From assembly GCF_006345805.1 (NCBI RefSeq), contig NW_021825907.1:1-14179 (forward strand): a stretch of DNA of 14,179 bases. Direction: 5' to 3'. Made by a program: the position numbers and the translations under genes. The notes under the pieces are model-generated. The model ran no database searches. It worked only from the letters and a program-made list of their open reading frames with translations, and was not told where the DNA came from. The first letter of the stretch is position 1, and every line of letters begins with the position of its first letter. Shown here piece by piece: positions 1,663 to 14,179 of this stretch. This DNA comes from Octopus sinensis (lineage: Eukaryota).

Positions 1663-2750
1663 TCAGTGATTTCTCTTCTTCGCTTGGAAGAAGAGTTTGC
1701 AACAAAATTTCATCATTTCCATTTCTGCGTCAAAGTAATTGTTCAACTGAGTGTCCTCACGACATGCCAGCTCCGCAAGTTGATTGGCGGCAGAGGCGTA
1801 CTCCTCGTTGTCTACCTTCATCCCATGTCTGTGTTCAATAAGCATACTCTCTAGAGTCCTCTTCAGCACAACCGACTGGATGTATGTCCTCGTTCCTTCT
1901 TCAATGGATAACTTGTCCATATGACTTTTAAAGAACTTTGAGACAACTCCATCCCATGTCAAGACAATTGGAATAATCTTCACTTTTGCTTCATAGAGAA
2001 CTGACAGTTCATTTGCAAGCAGGTCATATTGTGAAAATTCTCCACTTCAACTTGCTTTTAAACGGTCTTGCGAGGTAACTCCCACTTCGATTAAATGAAT
2101 TCTCTTTTCCTCTTGTCATAAACGAAGATATCAGGTTTATTGAATTGAACCTTTGTTTCAGTCATAATTGAAGTGTCAACTCTGATTTCGACATTTTGGG
2201 TCGACAGTGTTGACACGACTGAATGTCCTTTCAATTTCCTGCTTCGTTTTATTCCATACATTCGACACAAGTGGAGATGAATACACTTTACCACTTCGTT
2301 GTGTCTTCGGAGAATCACTGTTTAGCATCCTACCACACCGCGTGGCTAGATGGTCAACAGTCTGCCTGCTTTTTTTGCAGTGGACGCATAGTGATCCCGT
2401 GTATGCAAAGAACAAATTCCTATCTTGCAAAAGACAGTACAATGCTTCGCTTCGTGGACCATTGTTCCCTTTCGATAGCCATTGCGAAGAAGTAGATATG
2501 TCGACATCTGATTCCTCCATACATTTGAACATCACCGAGTGTAGTGATTTACTGTTAATCGGTTAAGCAAGAGTTTCCTTTGTGCGTCCTTCAGTAACTC
2601 AATGGTCAGATTTTCCCTGCCGACAGCTGCATATTTGGAGACAAGAAATTCTGCGATTGTGGCTAAGTGCCATTTTTTTCCTTTTATTACTCGCAGAATA
2701 CCCGACCTCCGCAGACAGGTAGTCGACTGTTTTTCCAAACTTTTAAGAAA
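1663..2750 (-). mobile_element. 5'-truncated R4/Dong-like non-LTR retrotransposon (end of RT, CCHC finger, restriction-like endonuclease)
   Basis: Frameshifted ORFs give LQDRNLF, CVHCKKSRQTVDHLATRC (CCHC), RRHNEVVK, KPDIFVYD...IEVGVT (PD-(D/E)xK-type RLE) and KIIPIVLTWDGVV, with a stop at 1663-1665. Confidence 0.85.
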
Positions 2751-2752
2751 CT

Positions 2753-3320
2753 GAAATACGAGTTGATACAACAATTCCAACAGAGTTGAAAATTCAATAT
2801 AACAAACCCGACATTTTTTTCTACGACAAAAGAGAAAACCTAATATGGCTTATTGAAGTGGGTGTGACTTCAATAAATAACCTAAAGAGTGTGGAAGTAG
2901 AAAAAACTGCACAAATACGACATTTTAGCTAGTGAATTACAACTGATTCACAAGACTAAGGTGAAAATTGTGCCAATTGTCATTACGTGGGATGGAATCG
3001 TTTCAACAATCTACCGCAAGTACATGAAGCTCCTTGGGATTGAAGAACGTGTTCGGTCTTACATCCAGACTGTAACGCTGAAGGCCACTCTGGAGAGCAT
3101 GTTTGTCGAGTACAAACATGGCTTCAGTGAAATTCTGGACTCTGCAAATTCCGTAAATAGGGACTGGCGGAAAATAATTTCTCTATGAAGATCAGCAAGT
3201 CCCTTAAGAGGCCCAGAGACTGTACGCCCCAGGCGGAGATTGAGGATCATGGCGGGGAAGATCAAAGTGGAGTTATGGGGAACTCGGGAAGCAAAAATGA
3301 GAGTCGTCTAATTATTAGTT
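2753..3320 (+). mobile_element. Second, divergent R4/Dong-like RLE retrotransposon 3' fragment
   Basis: EIRVDTTIPTELKIQYNKPDIF...LIEVGVTS...KYDILASEL...KIVPIVITWDGIV...YIQTVTLKATLESM. It shares 31/53 identical residues with the minus-strand copy over the C-terminal segment. The 3' boundary is approximate. Confidence 0.8.
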
Positions 3321-3360: not shown

Positions 3361-3980
3361 TTATTATTATTTATTTATTAACTCCAAGATCACCGAGAAA
3401 GATAGGTCAGAATAACTAATTAGGGGATCTCTGCCTCAAACAACAGCCGTACTCTCCTTACATGATCTTCTGATGACCCAACCGTAACCCGGAAACGCCT
3501 TCTCTTCCTTCTGCAGAGGAACTCAATCGGAGTGAATTTCTTTATAACCGACCGAAATTCCTATGCATGGGCCACCTTTTCCTTGAGTGGGTTTCCCAGT
3601 TCCTTGCAGAAACGTAGGAAACCCTGTCCATTCTTCTGCGTCGCCTCCTCGGAGGCAGGGCTGCCAACTGAGGTGTCAGTGTGGAGCATAATCTTCCTTC
3701 TGAGTGAGTTCAAACGTTCCGCTTTCGAACAAGCAATTGCAAACCTCCAGGCTGAGCAGGCATACTCAACCGTCGGGGCAATCACTTGTTGGTAAATTTT
3801 GCTGACACAATCTTTCAGGAGAAAGGGACTCTTCTTTAACAGAGCTTTCAAGACGTTCCACTTCCGAAGACCTTTAGCTAGGGTCTCCTCCACGTGACTT
3901 GAGAACGTCATTAAGGAGTCGAAGACCACGCCAAGGATCTTCTGGGTACGCGAAGAGGGAATAGGATTGTCTCCAATGAA
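3361..3980 (-). mobile_element. 5'-truncated LINE 3' fragment (I/Jockey-group-like RT thumb) with (TAA)n tail and 13-bp TSD
   Basis: KILGVVFDSLMTFSSHVEE...KIYQQVIAPTVEYACSAW thumb motifs. The minus-strand tail TAATAAATAAATAATAATAA is at 3361-3380, and TSD TTGTTTCATTTTA is at 3348-3360 and 3981-3993. Confidence 0.85.
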
Positions 3981-4047
3981 TTGTTTCATTTTAGGTTATC
4001 CTAATATATTTTTAGATAAAATTTATCGTTAATTTGTAATAAAATTT

Positions 4048-4774
4048 GGTACTTTTGTCGAGTGGTCGCAGTTTTTTTAGGCCTTTTAAAAAATCTAATA
4101 ATTTTTGAGGTGGAATATATTATATTTTATTTAAGTCGCTCTATCAATAATTTAAAATATTATTAAATTTTTTACTAATTATTTTCTAATTTTTTAATTA
4201 TGGCGAGCATGTACCTAATATTGATATAAACTGGCACTATAGGTCACATGGAAAATTCTGTTGTGGACTTATGCAAATCAAATTCCGACAGCTCCCAAAA
4301 GTAAGGAGGATGCAGTGCATTTTCTGCAAAATGTGGATATCCTTTCAAAATCACGTATATGTCCGAAGGGACATCAGATGGAATTAGTCTTGGGACCGAA
4401 GCTCAATTGGAAATGCTCAAGAGTTGGTTGTAGAGTCCAATGTTCTATTAAAAAAAGGTATAATTTCTCTCAAATAATTCTAGATCTGGTTAGAGAATTG
4501 TAATTTTTTCAGAATTTATGTGGCGAAAACAAATACAGAACTATAAGGAATCTTTTGCACAGATTGTAAAAGACATAAATTCCTTCTACAGTCCTGGAAT
4601 TTGGATGCCGCGTACTAAAAATGACTAAATTGGTAAATAAATTTTTAAATAATTTTAATAACCATTTAAATTATTGATAGAGGGTTATAAATTAAATAAT
4701 CTATTTTTCACTAAAAAAATTAATTAATTTTAATTATCTCTCTAAAAAAACTGCGACCACTCGACAAAAGTACC
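4048..4774 (+). mobile_element. Complete non-autonomous (internally deleted) Merlin/IS1016-like DNA transposon, 727 bp
   Basis: Perfect 33-bp TIRs GGTACTTTTGTCGAGTGGTCGCAGTTTTTTTAG (4048-4080 / 4742-4774), an inner 18-bp inverted repeat (4139-4156 / 4665-4682), and 8-bp TSD TAAAATTT (4040-4047 / 4775-4782). The remnant ORF 4248-4628 joins an N-terminal Zn ribbon (FLQ...RICPKGHQM...WKCSRVGC...SIKK) to the C-terminal EFMWRK motif. The DDE core is absent. Confidence 0.92.
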
Positions 4775-5149
4775 TAAAATTTTTTTTATTTGATATTAAA
4801 AAGTATCAATCAATTTTAGGCAATGGAGAAATTATAAATTCAATCTAACTGTTTCGTGCTCCTTTTTGATAATTAATAATATACTTATTAGCTTTAAATC
4901 GATTGTTCTTATATATTCAATAGAGATTTTTTAATTTTGAAAAATGCGGTCTTCCCCAAAGTGGTTATAATGTGTATGTTCAGTCTATTTTATTTATTAA
5001 GTTGCACTCAACGCACTTAACCTTTAATCCGAGTTCATCTTCACAGAAAAAAACTCAATTTTAGCCCATTCTTTGAAAATTTATTTTTGCATTTTTAAAA
5101 TAGAAATTCATTCCAAATTTTACGAGCCTGATTCTTTTATTATTATTAT

Positions 5150-7890: not shown

Positions 7891-8265
7891 CAATTAAGTA
7901 TTTTTTAACAACAATGTCAATTTTTTAAGATAATACAGCTGACTATCAAATTCTACCTCTTAGCTAAAAATAAAGTTAATACGTAAAAATCTCGCTATTG
8001 TTTCGGCAGAAAAAAAAAATAAAAAACCATTTTTAGCTCAAAATATGCACACTTTTAGCTAGTTAACCTATTAAAAATTTTTAATCTACCGAAAAATATT
8101 GATTTATAATGCGTATAGGGAATTTGTTAAAGTATTTTAAAGATTATATTATGTCACATGCCTCAGGGATTACTATGCCCCACTCGTTACCTCCGAATTA
8201 TTTCTGAGAAATAATTGATTAATGATTTTTTCAATTTTTTAGAAAAATTAATAATCAATCACAAT

Positions 8266-10580
8266 GAACGAACGAACGAACAGATTTTATTGACTTAGCA
8301 ACCGAAAGAGAAGAGTTATATGAAAAGGTTTTATTAAAATCGAGACACCGAAAGCCTCCTCCTTGCTTTCCTTTTCACTTCTCATGCCCTTTGCAATGAG
8401 CAGAGGACTTGCCGAATGTTTTGAGTTTGTTCGTCTAGCTCTCTGGGGAGATCCTGATCAAGCCGTAGCTTATACGCCAGTTTAATCGCAAAGCGCCTTG
8501 TTTTCTCCAGTTTGGTGATTATGCGATTTCTTCGTCTGTAGGGTACCAACCTTCATGTCCATAGATAAGGACTGGTTCTACAGTCGCCTTATAGATGAAG
8601 AGAAAGGTGTCTGGGGAGAGATGGAAGCGTATAAGGCTTCTCAGGATCCCGGAACATTTCCTTCTTCTAGATTCCACGAACTTAAGGAACGATCCGTCAG
8701 CCCCGATCGTTACCCCAAGGTAGCGTAGGTCGTCAGAGATTCTTAGTCCCATTGTCTCCAGAAGTGGTTCTCTTCCTTTCCGAGTTTTAGAAACCCACGT
8801 GATGGTGGACTTGTCTCGTGCTAAGGAGAGGGCTTTCTCCGTAGCCCAAGACTCAACCATCGCTATATATTCCCTCAGCCTTTTCCAAGAGAGGTCCTTG
8901 GATCGCGACAGATCCGTAACCAATATGTCGTCCGCATAGATGATTAGTAGACTCTCCGGATTTACTGGTTTCGGGATGTCGGCAACGTATAAGTTGAAAA
9001 GTAGAGGGCTCAGGACCGACCCTTGAGGCACTCCCCTCCTTAGATTGATTGTATCCGAGGTCCGGTTACCACATCTGATAAAAGACTTTCGCATGTGTAA
9101 GAAATTCTCTAGCCATTTGACAGTCCTTTGCCCCGGAAGGATACTGATGATCCTTTCCAGGAGGCCTAGGTGCCAAACGCTGTCGAACGCTTTGAAATGT
9201 CCAGACAAACAGCTGTCATCCCCATCTTGTGTGTAAGGGCCCTCGAGATTTGCGTTTCCAGTTGGGCAAAGCAGTTTCCACAGGACTTCCCACGTCGGAA
9301 ACCCCATTGTTCTTTAGCCAGGTAACCTGACTCCTCCACGAGAATAGATAATCTGTTAAAGATTATACGTTCCATGATTCTTGATATGGAGCAGATGAGA
9401 CTTATAGGTCGGAAATTTTCTGCACGGTCTTTAGGTTTCCCTGCCTTTGGAATCATTCGTACCACGGTTTTTTCCATGCATTCGGGACGTATCCAGTCTC
9501 CCAACTGGCATTGAAAAGTATCGTTATTATCTTGACTAGGCTTATCGGGGCCTCTTTGAAGACTCGGATGGGTATGTAATCAAAACCCGGTGCGTTGTCC
9601 TTGCATCTTTTAATTGCTAGTAGGGTTTCATCCAGGGTGATTGCGTGACAAAGTCGACCAGGGGACATTTTCGCAGAGGCTATTGCCCTCTTTTTATCGT
9701 CCATTATATCTGTCGGGACAAAACAGCTCGGGTCGACATCTTGAATTTTCGCCAGTTGTTGACGTAAAGCGTCAGGTACATCGTCTCGGTTGATGGCATA
9801 GCCATTTTCTGTGGTTAAATTGATTTCATCTCCTTTGCATTCCGTTTCTTTAGGCGATTATATGCCTTCCAGAAACTTGGGTGTCTTCGATTAAGCTTAG
9901 AACATTCCAATCTCCAAGCTGAGTCAATGTTTTCTTTAGACCTTTTGTCGATCCTCTTTTTAAGAGAGGAAATCATTGCTCGTAGGCGTGTGCAGTCTGT
10001 TGGGTCAAAACATCTGCGTAGCCTCTTCTGGTATCTTGCCTTTTCTTTCAGGAGACTCACTACTGTGTCGTCGAGTTCATGAGTCCCTCCACCAGAGTGT
10101 TTAATGAACTTTTTCCTGGAGAACTTCTCCAAAGAAGTGTTGATAAGATTCCTAACGAGCTGGTCCAGACTTTCAATTTGTTTTGTCGTGTGAACTGCTG
10201 CCCGATGTATGAGTGACTCTAGCGAGGTTGTCAGGAATAGGGACACAAGGGGCCAATTCGTTTGATTGGTATTGTATCCAATAAATACTTCATCTTGCAG
10301 AACTGAGCTTGCACGTAACACCATTGTTTGAGGAAGGTGATCGCTTCCAATATCAATTTCAATGCGTGGGCGGTCACAGAGGGGAGCTAAGCAGTCCGCC
10401 ACGAGAAACACACACCAGTCGATCTTCTCCGTAACATGAGAAATGATTCGTTTCGTCAGAGGACCAGACCTCAAAACCGTGTCTCGCCGATAAGGTATGA
10501 AGTAACCGTCGGTCACTGTTTGTTGATACGCATCCATATAGCGAGTTCTTTGCGTTTAGGTCTCCGACTAGAATCGACTA
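8266..10580 (-). mobile_element. 5'-truncated APE-RT non-LTR retrotransposon (I/Jockey-group-like ORF2) with (GTTC)4 tail
   Basis: EN motifs ILVGDLNAKN, KIDW, GSDHLP. RT motifs APGFDYI, PKAGKP, FRPISLICSISRIMER, QWGFRRGKSC, LDISKAFDSVWH, GVPQGSVLSPLLFNLYVAD, YADD, YLGVTI. The tail gaacgaacgaacgaac is at 8266-8281. No TSD was found. Confidence 0.93.
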
Positions 10581-11002
10581 AAATTCAACCTATATATTAG
10601 GTTAATTAGAGTACAATTAATGATAAATAAAAAGATGCTTTAAAACAAATAAATTAAAATAATATTTTTATACAACAAACCATTTTGACTGATAAGCACA
10701 TTAAAACATATTTTAAAAATGTGAATTGTGTGAAACGCTTTAAAGGCACATAATTTGATAGTTTTATAATTAACTCTAACCAGTTTTTAGTTTTATTTAA
10801 ACATTTTTTGAAATGTAAAAAGATAAAGGTTTAAAATCATCTGTAGATCTCTTATAAAAAACTCAAACTTTATCCAGTTTTTAGTTTAAAATCATATATA
10901 GATCTGAAGTTTAAAACGAAAAATTAAATTTGTCCTTTTTTGATTCTTTTCATGTGAACAATCTTTGTATCTCCTTCGAAAATTCTACTTTAAATTTTTT
11001 CA

Positions 11003-11142
11003 AACCCTAAACCCAACCAATTCCCTAACCTTCACCCAAACCCTAACCTTCACCCAAACCCTAACCTTCACCCAAACCCTAACCTTCACCCTAACCCTAA
11101 ACTATACCCTAACCCTAACCTATACCCTAACCATAACCATGA
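11003..11142. repeat. Interstitial telomere-like (CCCTAA/TTAGGG) variant array
   Basis: 20 in-register hexamers at 11023-11142, 9 of them perfect CCCTAA, including three exact copies of the 18-mer CCCTAA-CCTTCA-CCCAAA. One more CCCTAA is at 11005. Confidence 0.9.
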
Positions 11143-11557: not shown

Positions 11558-13037
11558 TTAATCCGACCAGCCAGCCTCATTTTCATCCTCCTCCATTGAT
11601 TCACTCTTTATGACTTTAGAAATACTCTTGATTAGTGGTGACTCCTCATACTTCTTCGACTTTGGAGGCTCTACATAGTCCTCTCCCTTCCCTTTTAGAG
11701 ACTCGCCTCTTCTTTTTAACACTTTTTGAGTTGTGACAATATATCCATTTTTTCCTCTTCCTTTTTTGGTTCAATCTCAGTTTTTGTTTCATTTTCTTTC
11801 CTTTTTCGGAATTTAAACTGATTTATTCCTCCCGCGTCAAGAATTGAGTCAAGCAGAGCCTTCAGTTTCGGTTCTCCCGAAGGCTTCGGAGTGACCTCGA
11901 CAGATTTTTTGTCATCTTCGACTACAAAATTTTCCTCGATTTCATTTTTTGATGACAAAGTCATGTTTTCCTCTGCAATTTCAGTTTTTGGAAAAATGTT
12001 GGATTCGGGATGCGAAGTCTCGACCTTTGGTAGTGTGGAGACTACGGGGTCCTCGGTGAATTCAGAATCAAGATCCGGTAAATCCACGGTGATTTCGGTC
12101 AAAATAATCGACGGAGCAATCCCCGTTTCTTTTTTAGGGAGATAATTCAAATCACTTACAATCCCTAAAATAACAAATTGAGTTTAACCAGAAAGCACGG
12201 GAAGACTTTCGGGGACCTTGATTTGAGGTACATCACCCAAAATAGGATTGTAGTCAAAATTTAAACGCTGGAAAGGATCGAATTGATGGCCCAAAGTCAC
12301 GGTCTCCGGTGCCTTGGCTGGCTCGTGTCTTTTTTCATGTGGTTTTGTAATTTTTGAAACAACGTTAAGAGGATCAACAAAAGAATAGTTTTTAAATCTA
12401 TTTATTAAAATAAAAAATTAATAATAAATATAAAAATAAATTACGCATTTATATTTGTATTATATATAAGAAAATTTCCAGTGCTTTTCAAATTGTTTGG
12501 AGGCCTGCCAATTCCTCATGAAATGGTGTCTTATCCTTGTCTTTTAGTAAATCAAAAGAGGCTGGGACCATTGTAGAATTTTTATATTGAGAAATTAAAT
12601 CTAAATTCTAATAATTAAATTAAATAATTTTATTTTTATTTAAATTTATAATAGATATTTAAATAAAAAACTTTTGATAGTTTGTAGTGGAGTTTGGTTT
12701 CATTTTTAACATTTGGCATCACTTGGAGGTCATTTCTTGGAAATTTTATTGTCTGAGGCAAATTGAATGGAGAATAAATCCTATTGCTTTGCCCGATTGT
12801 CCAGTTTTTTAATTTTGCTCAACAATTGAAATTCTAGACTTTATGGATGACAATCTGTCCTTTCTAAATCTATCTATAGCTTTAATCGTTACATATTTAT
12901 ACATTTTGATTTATTTTTTGAATAAAATGTCTAAAATCTTGTTGGAACTTTTCTAATATTAGCAATGATTGGATAATCTTTTCCTCGTCTGGAATACAAG
13001 GAGAAATTATCGGTATAACTGACTGCTCAATGCTCAT
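11558..13037 (-). CDS. WASHC1: WASH complex subunit 1 (WASH1): WAHD domain plus VCA
   Basis: Exons 13037-12903, 12873-12672, 12607-12445, 12397-12189 and 12164-11558; GT-AG introns of 29, 64, 47 and 24 nt. The translation shows the WASH1 landmarks in order: VIPIISPCIPDEE, KAIGFYSP, GLPNNLKSTGNFLIYNTN, NYSFVDPL, YNPILGDVPQIKVPESLP, GIAPS, ALLDSILDAGGI (WH2), DILSQL..VLKRRGESLKGK (C) and acidic EEDENEAGWSD*. Several single-base homopolymer corrections are needed. Confidence 0.9.
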
Positions 13038-13327: not shown

Positions 13328-14179
13328 ATGGAGTTATTACTATGTAAAACAGCACATGCTAATTGGATAGAAGACTGGAAAGTAGGCGAACTAGTAAAAA
13401 TAAAAGTATAAAAAATATATATTTCAATTTAGGGCAACTTCCTTCTTCAGCTGTCGAGCCTGGCTCAGTCTCTCGCAAACCGAGAAGATGAAGATTGGAA
13501 AGTACAAGGAGCTCTCTGAACGGTATCTGTTCACTCCCATCGCCGTCGAGACTTCCGGCGTCATCGGCGAAAAGTCTCTTTCCTTTCTAAAAAAGCTGGC
13601 CGCATGATCTCCCATAAACGGGACACCCACGCGAGTCCAAGTGGCTTTTCGAAAGGATTTCCTTGGCCATAGTACGTGGAAACTGTGTTTCATTTACGAT
13701 GCCGGGAATTTAGTTAGTTAATAACTATTTGTTCTTACTTAAAAATGATATTTAAAATTGAAAAAAAAAAAAAAAAAAATTTAGGGCAACTTCTTCAAAA
13801 CAATGGGATATTCAAAAAATAGTAAACATTACTTATTCCCCGAGGAAATACTATATCTTACCAACAAGGGCTCACTAACATGTCTAAAAGACGGCCAAAT
13901 ACTACAGGCCGATGACCTGTCCCTTATAGTTGATGGAGTATTGGGGAGTAATGTCATGACTGTATACTCCAATTTAACACAACTGGGCTATGTACTACGT
14001 CGTAATACTACTCCTTTTTATTATTCCATTTTTGATGTTTATTTACCGTCTTTTGTTAAGACTTTTAAAAAATCCAATCCCACATCACCACAATATCATC
14101 TATTTGTAACAAGGTATTTTATTATATATTTTAATTAATTTAAATATTATTTATATATAATTTTAAACAGTATTTTTAG
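13328..14179 (+). CDS. TSEN54: tRNA-splicing endonuclease subunit Sen54 (3' incomplete; CRE insertion at the intron 1 acceptor)
   Basis: Exon 13328-13405 (MELLLCKTAHANWIEDWKVGELVKIK) joins in frame to exon 13785-14113 (GNFFKTMGYSKNSKHYLFPEEILYLTNKGSL...VYSNLTQLGYVLRR...IFDVYLPS...FKKSNP), which are Sen54 N-terminal and C-terminal signature motifs. The next intron starts with GT at 14114. Confidence 0.88.
13442..13779 (+). mobile_element. 5'-truncated CRE-clade non-LTR retrotransposon (RLE C-terminus, 3' UTR, poly(A)) with 16-bp TSD
   Basis: With small frameshift corrections it reads AEKMKIGKYKELSERYLFTPIAVETSGVIGEKSLSFLKKLGRMISHKTGHPRESKWLFERISLAIVRGN (CRE-type P-x-AVET-x-G and R-x-S-x-A-x-x-RGN motifs), stop at 13711-13713. 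A19 tail at 13761-13779; TSD AATTTAGGGCAACTTC at 13426-13441 and 13778-13793 (its first AA overlaps the tail). The insert is much more GC-rich than its flanks. Confidence 0.9.

Follow-up and report, generated by a model that had tools for sequence, protein, structure and literature searches.

Transposable elements that land in exons are in some cases spliced out of the transcript. Maize Ds and dSpm, the Drosophila 412 element in vermilion and Tc1 of C. elegans are exonic insertions of this kind that leave partial function to the gene, most or all of the element being spliced away, and they rely on cryptic sites within or close to the element whose products are usually imprecise. The L1 insertions found in exons in human disease consist of a truncated poly(A) copy with a 10-16-nt duplication and 5' microhomology, and they bring in a premature stop. 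Among the non-LTR retrotransposons that carry a restriction-like endonuclease (CRE, R2, R4, NeSL and HERO), classical CRE and R2 are site specific and occupy spliced-leader or rDNA genes. Introners, described from Micromonas, Aureococcus and other organisms, insert into coding sequence, where the duplicated target offers a 3' AG for precise removal, and co-option of the 3' AG from the target-site duplication is treated in a recent review (PMC11282704). Most of them are DNA transposons that make 3-nt duplications; they bring a donor of their own and exist in hundreds of spliced copies. Both spliced-out exonic transposons and splice sites supplied by a duplication are already established.

Here we describe a retrotransposon fragment in TSEN54, within a window (the whole stretch of DNA analysed) of 14,179 nt. 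The locus shares with introners a coding insertion whose duplicated target offers a 3' AG. It differs from them in that a single non-LTR fragment is involved, the donor would be borrowed and the acceptor is the duplicate of an existing one, so that an existing intron would be enlarged and no new one gained. In contrast to Ds/dSpm, 412 and Tc1, with their cryptic sites, the duplicated acceptor here would give a wild-type mRNA. From truncated LINE and L1 insertions we find no mechanistic difference; what is special is that the duplication spans an acceptor, and that it does so in a genome of ultra-short introns.

RESULTS

Identity of the interrupted gene

The gene had been named TSEN54 (Sen54), which encodes a subunit of the tRNA-splicing endonuclease, in the original prediction, and the assignment stands on a match to the Sen54 N-terminal domain (PF12928, E=1.9e-13) and on homologue alignments, both of which cross the junction restored by joining exon 1 to exon 2 (Table 1). 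The restored 135-residue fragment scored 50.7 bits against PF12928 (gathering cut-off, 24 bits) over residues 9-60, with the junction at 26/27. Exon 2 alone scored 39.5 bits, so that 11 bits and 18 positions of the profile come from exon 1. When 1.84 billion representatives were searched exhaustively with HMMER, 166 relatives were obtained at E<=1e-3 (best E=2.3e-13, 39% identity), nearly all of them collinear over query residues 9-105 and with fish Sen54 and cestode Sen54 among the named ones; no TSEN54 protein more than 39% identical was present in that collection. A word-indexed protein search with the restored fragment gave no match, and the exon-2 ORF was not found among called genes. Exact-pattern scans with exon 2 of metagenome and prokaryotic genome contigs recovered neither an empty-site allele nor a second copy.

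In the multiple alignment of homologues, exon 1 aligned to the W-x8-V-x3-K motif of Sen54, and the junction (slash) fell inside the conserved motif W-x8-V-x3-K/G-x-FF-x-TMG. Residues G27, G34, P45, E46, Y50 and L51 were invariant across the homologues, with which the C-terminal motif FKKS-x-P aligned as well. Because homologues align straight through the restored junction, the ancestral gene is taken to have consisted of exon 1, the 27-nt intron and exon 2. TSEN54 is seen as far as intron 2, the window stopping at 14179, before the C-terminal domain.

Layout of the locus and the target-site duplication

The features of the locus are collected in Table 1.

Table 1. Coordinates of the TSEN54 locus and its insert within the window
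Feature	Position	Strand	Description
TSEN54 exon 1	13328..13405	+	26 codons, MELLL...VKIK; ATG at 13328; translation MELLLCKTAHANWIEDWKVGELVKIK
Native intron 1	13406..13432	+	GT-AG, 27 nt, GTATAAAAAATATATATTTCAATTTAG; proximal acceptor AG 13431-13432
Left copy of target-site duplication	13428..13441	+	Last 5 nt of intron and first 9 nt of exon 2
Retrotransposon body	13442..13760	+	5'-truncated, non-LTR; tblastn and blastn against dicyemid-like contigs
Pure poly(A) tail	13761..13779	+	19 A; read from the sequence
Right copy of target-site duplication	13780..13793	+	Carries distal acceptor AG 13783-13784
TSEN54 exon 2	13785..14113	+	GNFFKTMGYSK...HLFVT; ORF intact
Start of intron 2	14114..14179	+	GT at 14114; length 57 or 66 nt, depending on the candidate AG; read from the sequence; window ends inside
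Premature TGA after proximal splicing	13517..13519	+	From translation
Cryptic GT in insert	13502..13503	+	AAA/GTACAAGG; from GT/AG pair enumeration; hypothetical
Downstream in-frame ATG (Met33)	13803..13805	+	Starts ORF 13803-14138, 111 codons

The two copies of the target-site duplication form an exact direct repeat of 14 nt, TTTAGGGCAACTTC, or of 16 nt when two A's are counted. Even with one mismatch allowed, these were its only two matches in the whole window, where 0.01 matches are expected by chance and where none of 200 shuffles contained two. The duplication spans the boundary between intron 1 and exon 2, so that the acceptor is present twice, 352 nt apart, and from -7 to +9 no difference is seen between the proximal and the distal acceptor. 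The insertion point lies 9 nt into exon 2 and not within the intron; the first 9 exon-2 bases, which precede the insert, read GGCAACTTC. Between the repeats (13442-13779) lie 338 nt with a GC content of 49.6%; exon 2 has 35% and the upstream sequence 20%.

The original prediction had posited a 27-nt intron running from GT 13406 to AG 13432 and an acceptor recreated downstream, at AG 13783-13784, by the target-site duplication; the coordinates of the intron hold, and the second AG does lie in the right-hand copy of the exact 14-mer repeat. Translation agreed with its two predicted outcomes. Splicing of 13405^13785 takes out 379 nt and yields ...VKIK/GNFFKTMGYSK..., open to 14113, whereas splicing of 13405^13433 reads GNFLLQLSSLAQSLANREDEDWKVQGAL, 28 codons, and then reaches the TGA at 13517-13519. 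Retention of intron 1 leads to a TAA stop at once.

Origin of the insert

That the insert is a retrotransposon 3' fragment had been proposed beforehand, and homology to related copies, the poly(A) tail and the target-site duplication all bear this out. By sequence comparison it corresponds to the 3' end, truncated on its 5' side, of a non-LTR retrotransposon that is poly(A)-tailed and encodes a reverse transcriptase (RT) and a C-terminal restriction-like nuclease. Of the C-terminal nuclease-associated module, the final ~90 codons are present (13443-13715, with two frameshifts); after two single-base frame corrections the insert translates as ...KMKIGKYKELSERYLFTPIAVETSGVIGEKSLSFLKKLGRMISHKTGHPRESKWLFERISLAIVRGNCVSF..., followed by a stop. 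An AT-rich 3' UTR of ~45 nt separates the stop codon from the A-run, which is A19 and not A20. The two frameshifts coincide with the only two internal 1-nt gaps in the blastn alignment to the closest relative (L006, described below), and they may not all be real, as the gene model of the neighbour suggests single-base homopolymer assembly errors. Because the insert starts downstream of the RPDG/WD-x-T catalytic motifs, it is non-autonomous; unlike the CRE, R2, R4, NeSL and HERO elements, it has neither the RT nor the catalytic part.

The insert peptide had no significant match in Pfam, PDB or a word-indexed protein search, and exact-pattern scans of metagenome and viral contigs with the insert returned nothing. 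A second copy of the insert is absent from the window, and Rfam and tRNA scans of the whole window gave no hits.

Both ends of the insert are as expected of target-primed reverse transcription. At the 3' end, the poly(A) tail directly abuts the target-site duplication; at the 5' end, the insert is truncated, and what is left is homologous to the 3' end of an element that encodes an RT. The left repeat finishes with CTTC, 4 nt that also precede the matching point in L006, and the 5' junction therefore falls within a 4-nt microhomology. Microhomology at the 5' end is usual for truncated LINE insertions. The perfect duplication and the pure A19 tail indicate that the insertion is recent.

Two minor readings concern the presence of the insert in the DNA. 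An assembly artefact, with the fragment misplaced through a chimeric read or a collapsed repeat, could be entertained in view of the apparent homopolymer-length errors in the window, where the WASH-like neighbour gene requires at least one 1-nt A-run correction; yet the precise 14-nt duplication, the A-tail, the 5' microhomology and the family-typical architecture argue for real retrotransposition and not a mis-join, which leaves an artefact with only a marginal chance. The other is somatic removal at the DNA level, through recombination between the 14-mers or through programmed repeat elimination, such as is reported for dicyemids, with the insert then confined to the germline. The exact direct repeats are the one sequence feature that speaks for it, but 14-nt repeats are a normal by-product of insertion and the sequence holds no evidence for DNA-level removal; we judge it extremely unlikely.

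One further resemblance was seen between insert and host gene. The exon-1 segment at 13370-13384, GAAGACTGGAAAGTA, shares 14 of 15 bases with the insert segment at 13490-13504, GAAGATTGGAAAGTA, and after proximal splicing both encode EDWKV. Since the element's closest relative has another sequence at this place, the match is probably due to chance.

Related copies and element family

Relatives were found in seven 17-21-kb stretches (L001-L007) of GCA_006345805.1 contigs labelled Octopus sinensis, contigs that were chosen because their proteins matched a second nuclease module of the window (1663-2540, minus strand). At least six copies related to the insert module were present there at 40-67% amino-acid identity (tblastn). 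The best, in L006, reached E=7.6e-30 and 67% amino-acid identity, and 73% over 275 nt at the DNA level (blastn); five more ranged from 40 to 56%. An alignment of the insert module with its relatives contained 14 invariant columns. Relatives end in tails of A7-A13, 40-70 nt past the stop codon, with A-tails in 8 copies, and two short 5'-truncated relatives, in L006 and L007, are flanked by direct repeats of 14 and 11 nt, respectively.

The most complete context came from L001 (17948-20434, minus strand), where an insert-type module ends an 829-residue ORF with an RT domain (PF00078, E=3.3e-15). Its best match among solved structures was the R2 retrotransposon protein (E=1.9e-4), and inspection by eye revealed a Cys/His cluster and ...DGKRPDG...WD-x-TC... 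motifs upstream of the module. No Pfam match besides RVT_1 was obtained for this ORF, which argues that it contains no AP-endonuclease domain.

The insert had been ascribed to CRE. The single ORF of L001, with RT, Cys/His and restriction-nuclease-like module, resembles the restriction-like-endonuclease elements in general, and its layout fits CRE, a fit shared equally by R2, R4, NeSL and HERO. Spliced-leader site specificity, the hallmark of classical CRE, was not seen: the insert lies in TSEN54 and the flanks of its relatives are unrelated. Whereas classical CRE and R2 are site specific, the relatives found here lie at varied AT-rich sites.

Host organism

The DNA of the window is, judging from its sequence, most likely dicyemid, and the Octopus sinensis-labelled contigs of GCA_006345805.1 look like contamination from a kidney parasite of this group. 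Cephalopod kidneys are the habitat of dicyemids. Repeats of the window at 2753-2925 and 4045-4774 are 94-98% identical to copies on Octopus sinensis-labelled contigs. In L007 (15353-16369, minus strand; VCDQ01004311.1), a gene for a GSK3-like kinase has a 25-nt GT-AG intron after CDFG. To our knowledge, octopus genes do not contain introns of 25 nt, and the contigs are therefore regarded as dicyemid-like, a type of host in which introns are typically ~26 nt. The next apparent intron of the kinase gene, of 26 nt, seems to end in TG and not AG.

Introns shorter than 30 nt have been reported among animals only in myxobolid myxozoans and in the dicyemid Dicyema japonicum (PMC13644364), and the genome of the latter has 36.7% GC, 49% repeats and many LINE copies (PMC6736024). 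A ciliate (Paramecium-like) host was rejected on account of the animal-type WASH neighbour, the TTAGGG-type repeats and the presence of the closest repeat copies on octopus-associated contigs. A myxobolid would share introns of less than 30 nt but is disfavoured by the link to octopus. The original prediction had also spoken of a spliceosome used to ~25-nt introns. This was right in that the host appears dicyemid-like, with ultra-short introns, but it was too narrow, as the same window holds likely introns of 47-66 nt.

Surroundings of the locus

A divergent WASH-like gene (11560-13037, minus strand) lies ~290 bp from the TSEN54 start. It matches the WAHD domain (PF11945, E=1.8e-24) and has a WH2-like motif and an acidic C-terminus, ...EAGWSD; the Pfam match points to WASH and not to WAVE/SCAR. 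The best conceptual model has seven GT-AG introns of 24-64 nt and includes at least one 1-nt A-run correction near 12485, which suggests homopolymer assembly errors or incipient decay. Just downstream of this gene, at 11001-11138, lies an interstitial telomere-like array based on CCCTAA, with an 18-nt unit, CCCTAACCTTCACCCAAA, in 6.4 copies with 93% matches.

Two 5'-truncated copies of a second LINE family stand head to head at 1663-2780 (minus strand) and 2750-3190 (plus strand), and the family also occurs in L001-L005 and L007. Its restriction-like nuclease is marked by C-x2-C-x8-H-x4-C, RHN and KPD..E..K. The module at 1663-2540 matched Octopus sinensis-labelled proteins with up to 77% identity, on GCA_006345805.1 contigs of 40-690 kb, and records from microsporidia (Hamiltosporidium, Nosema and Vairimorpha) and Papilio with ~50% identity; this distribution hints at assembly contamination, horizontal spread or both. 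The same module had no significant sequence match in Pfam or PDB. BLASTP between it and the insert module was not significant (E=0.6), and the two are thus assigned to different families.

Other repeats are scattered through the window. An element of ~730 bp at 4045-4775 has imperfect inverted ends (84-nt arms, 75% complementary); the short ORF inside it shows a Cys/His pattern and matched nothing in Pfam. Because copies of the element in L003 and L005 are 94-98% identical, it is considered a young, MITE-like DNA element. A degenerate LINE at 8250-10600 (minus strand) shows an AP-endonuclease-like motif, GDLNAKN..., an RT (PF00078, E=3.4e-22), many frameshifts and a (GTTC)n-like tail. In the region 3420-3990 (minus strand), a separate LINE C-terminal fragment was found at 3561-3989. 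Positions 1-420 contain an A-rich low-complexity array of 400 nt, and positions 455-622 an 80-nt unit in 2.1 copies with 88% matches.

Choice between the two acceptors

The structure shows that a non-LTR retrotransposon inserted by target-primed reverse transcription 9 bp past the 3' splice site of TSEN54 intron 1. The copy was dead on arrival, being 5'-truncated within the nuclease module and joined at the 4-nt microhomology, and the staggered cut gave rise to the 14-nt duplication, in which TTTAG, the acceptor, is followed by the first 9 bases of the exon. The insertion left the native donor, the intron body, the acceptor and the first 9 exon bases untouched. Since this context is unchanged and is transcribed ~350 nt ahead of the distal copy, excision of the 27-nt intron most likely goes on as it did before the insertion. 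The mRNA would then enter the element and terminate at the TGA, and use of the distal acceptor would be a minor leak at best. With middling confidence, we favour the view that this copy of TSEN54 is a null or strongly hypomorphic allele, with minor rescue at most. The insertion allele is probably young, and segregating or heterozygous.

What is known of very short introns may bear on this choice. In animals with ultra-short introns, conserved A residues lie farther from the AG as the intron lengthens (PMC13644364). From this we infer, as that paper does not, that branch selection may be measured from the 5' end; with such a ruler, the first suitable AG would be favoured.

The same locus could instead be rescued by its duplicated acceptor. 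If the native donor and the distal acceptor were joined often enough, normal TSEN54 mRNA would be made by removal of an intron enlarged 14-fold, to 379 nt, and the allele would be near-neutral. Twenty AGs were enumerated from the native donor, and only the one at 13784 restores the open exon-2 frame, with exactly the conserved ...VKIK/GNFFKTMG junction; from -7 to +9 its surroundings are those of the native acceptor. The A-rich tract before it resembles the weak A-rich branch region of ultra-short introns (PMC13644364), with 76% identity over 41 nt. Longer introns (>100 nt) occur in such genomes (PMC13644364), and likely ones of 47-66 nt are present in the window. The allele sits in the assembly, so that it is more likely tolerated than lethal, and exon 2 is intact and free of decay. 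Splice sites supplied by a target-site duplication have their precedent in introners (PMC11282704), and here such a site coincides with frame restoration, as a potential of the sequence. Against rescue, the proximal acceptor is unaltered, lies at a typical distance and is transcribed first, and 18 further AGs stand between the two acceptors. Folding of the RNA from 13380 to 13810 gave no significant structure (z=-1.64) and no end-to-end stem that would bring the distal site closer to the donor. We regard rescue as possible but doubtful. It would mean, equally tentatively, that an insertion in an essential gene is tolerated by means of a cloned acceptor, with the poly(A) serving as branch region, and that an intron expansion is caught at a polymorphic stage.

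Splicing may also take place twice. After removal of the 27-nt intron, a second one of 283 nt could run from the GT at 13502 to AG 13784 and leave an in-frame insertion of 23 residues, GNFLLQLSSLAQSLANREDEDWK, before G27. Among the pairs available after proximal splicing, this is the only one that is open and in register with all of exon 2; two others also keep the frame, but they use AG 13822, at the cost of 12 conserved residues of exon 2. The GTA at 13502 agrees with 'GTa', the reduced consensus that Dicyema donors are reported to have (PMC13644364), and the product keeps 45.1 bits on PF12928. Yet AGs at 13508, 13511 and 13550 are nearer to this GT and each leads to a stop, the same AAAGTA stands in exon 1 (13379-13384), where evidently no splicing starts from it, and the 23 residues would interrupt a conserved motif. 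Such a product seems highly improbable.

Nor does translation from within exon 2 offer an easy way out. Re-initiation, or a transcript start in or after the insert, could produce an N-terminally truncated protein from Met33, whose in-frame ATG lies 19 nt past the distal acceptor and opens an ORF of 111 codons. A start at this position, however, drops 32 residues, among them half of the Sen54 N-terminal domain, and lowers the PF12928 score from 50.7 to 26.7 bits, and we consider it very improbable.

DISCUSSION

As far as its sequence goes, the locus is most safely described as an insertional allele of the ordinary kind that contains, unusually, an escape route of its own. Three things would be unusual about that route if it were real: the inserted DNA is a non-LTR fragment, the acceptor has been cloned in such a way that splicing to it would yield an exactly wild-type product, and the introns of the host are among the shortest in animals.

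If the distal acceptor is not used, the locus would represent an essential gene disabled by a young insertion, and its use would be confined to showing that non-LTR elements are still active, and heterozygosity present, in a dicyemid-like genome. If it is used, the locus would provide a natural experiment on the choice of 3' splice sites, setting a 5'-end ruler against the local branch and AG context in a genome with introns of less than 30 nt. It would then also offer a rare snapshot of intron growth by retrotransposition, free of cost to the host.
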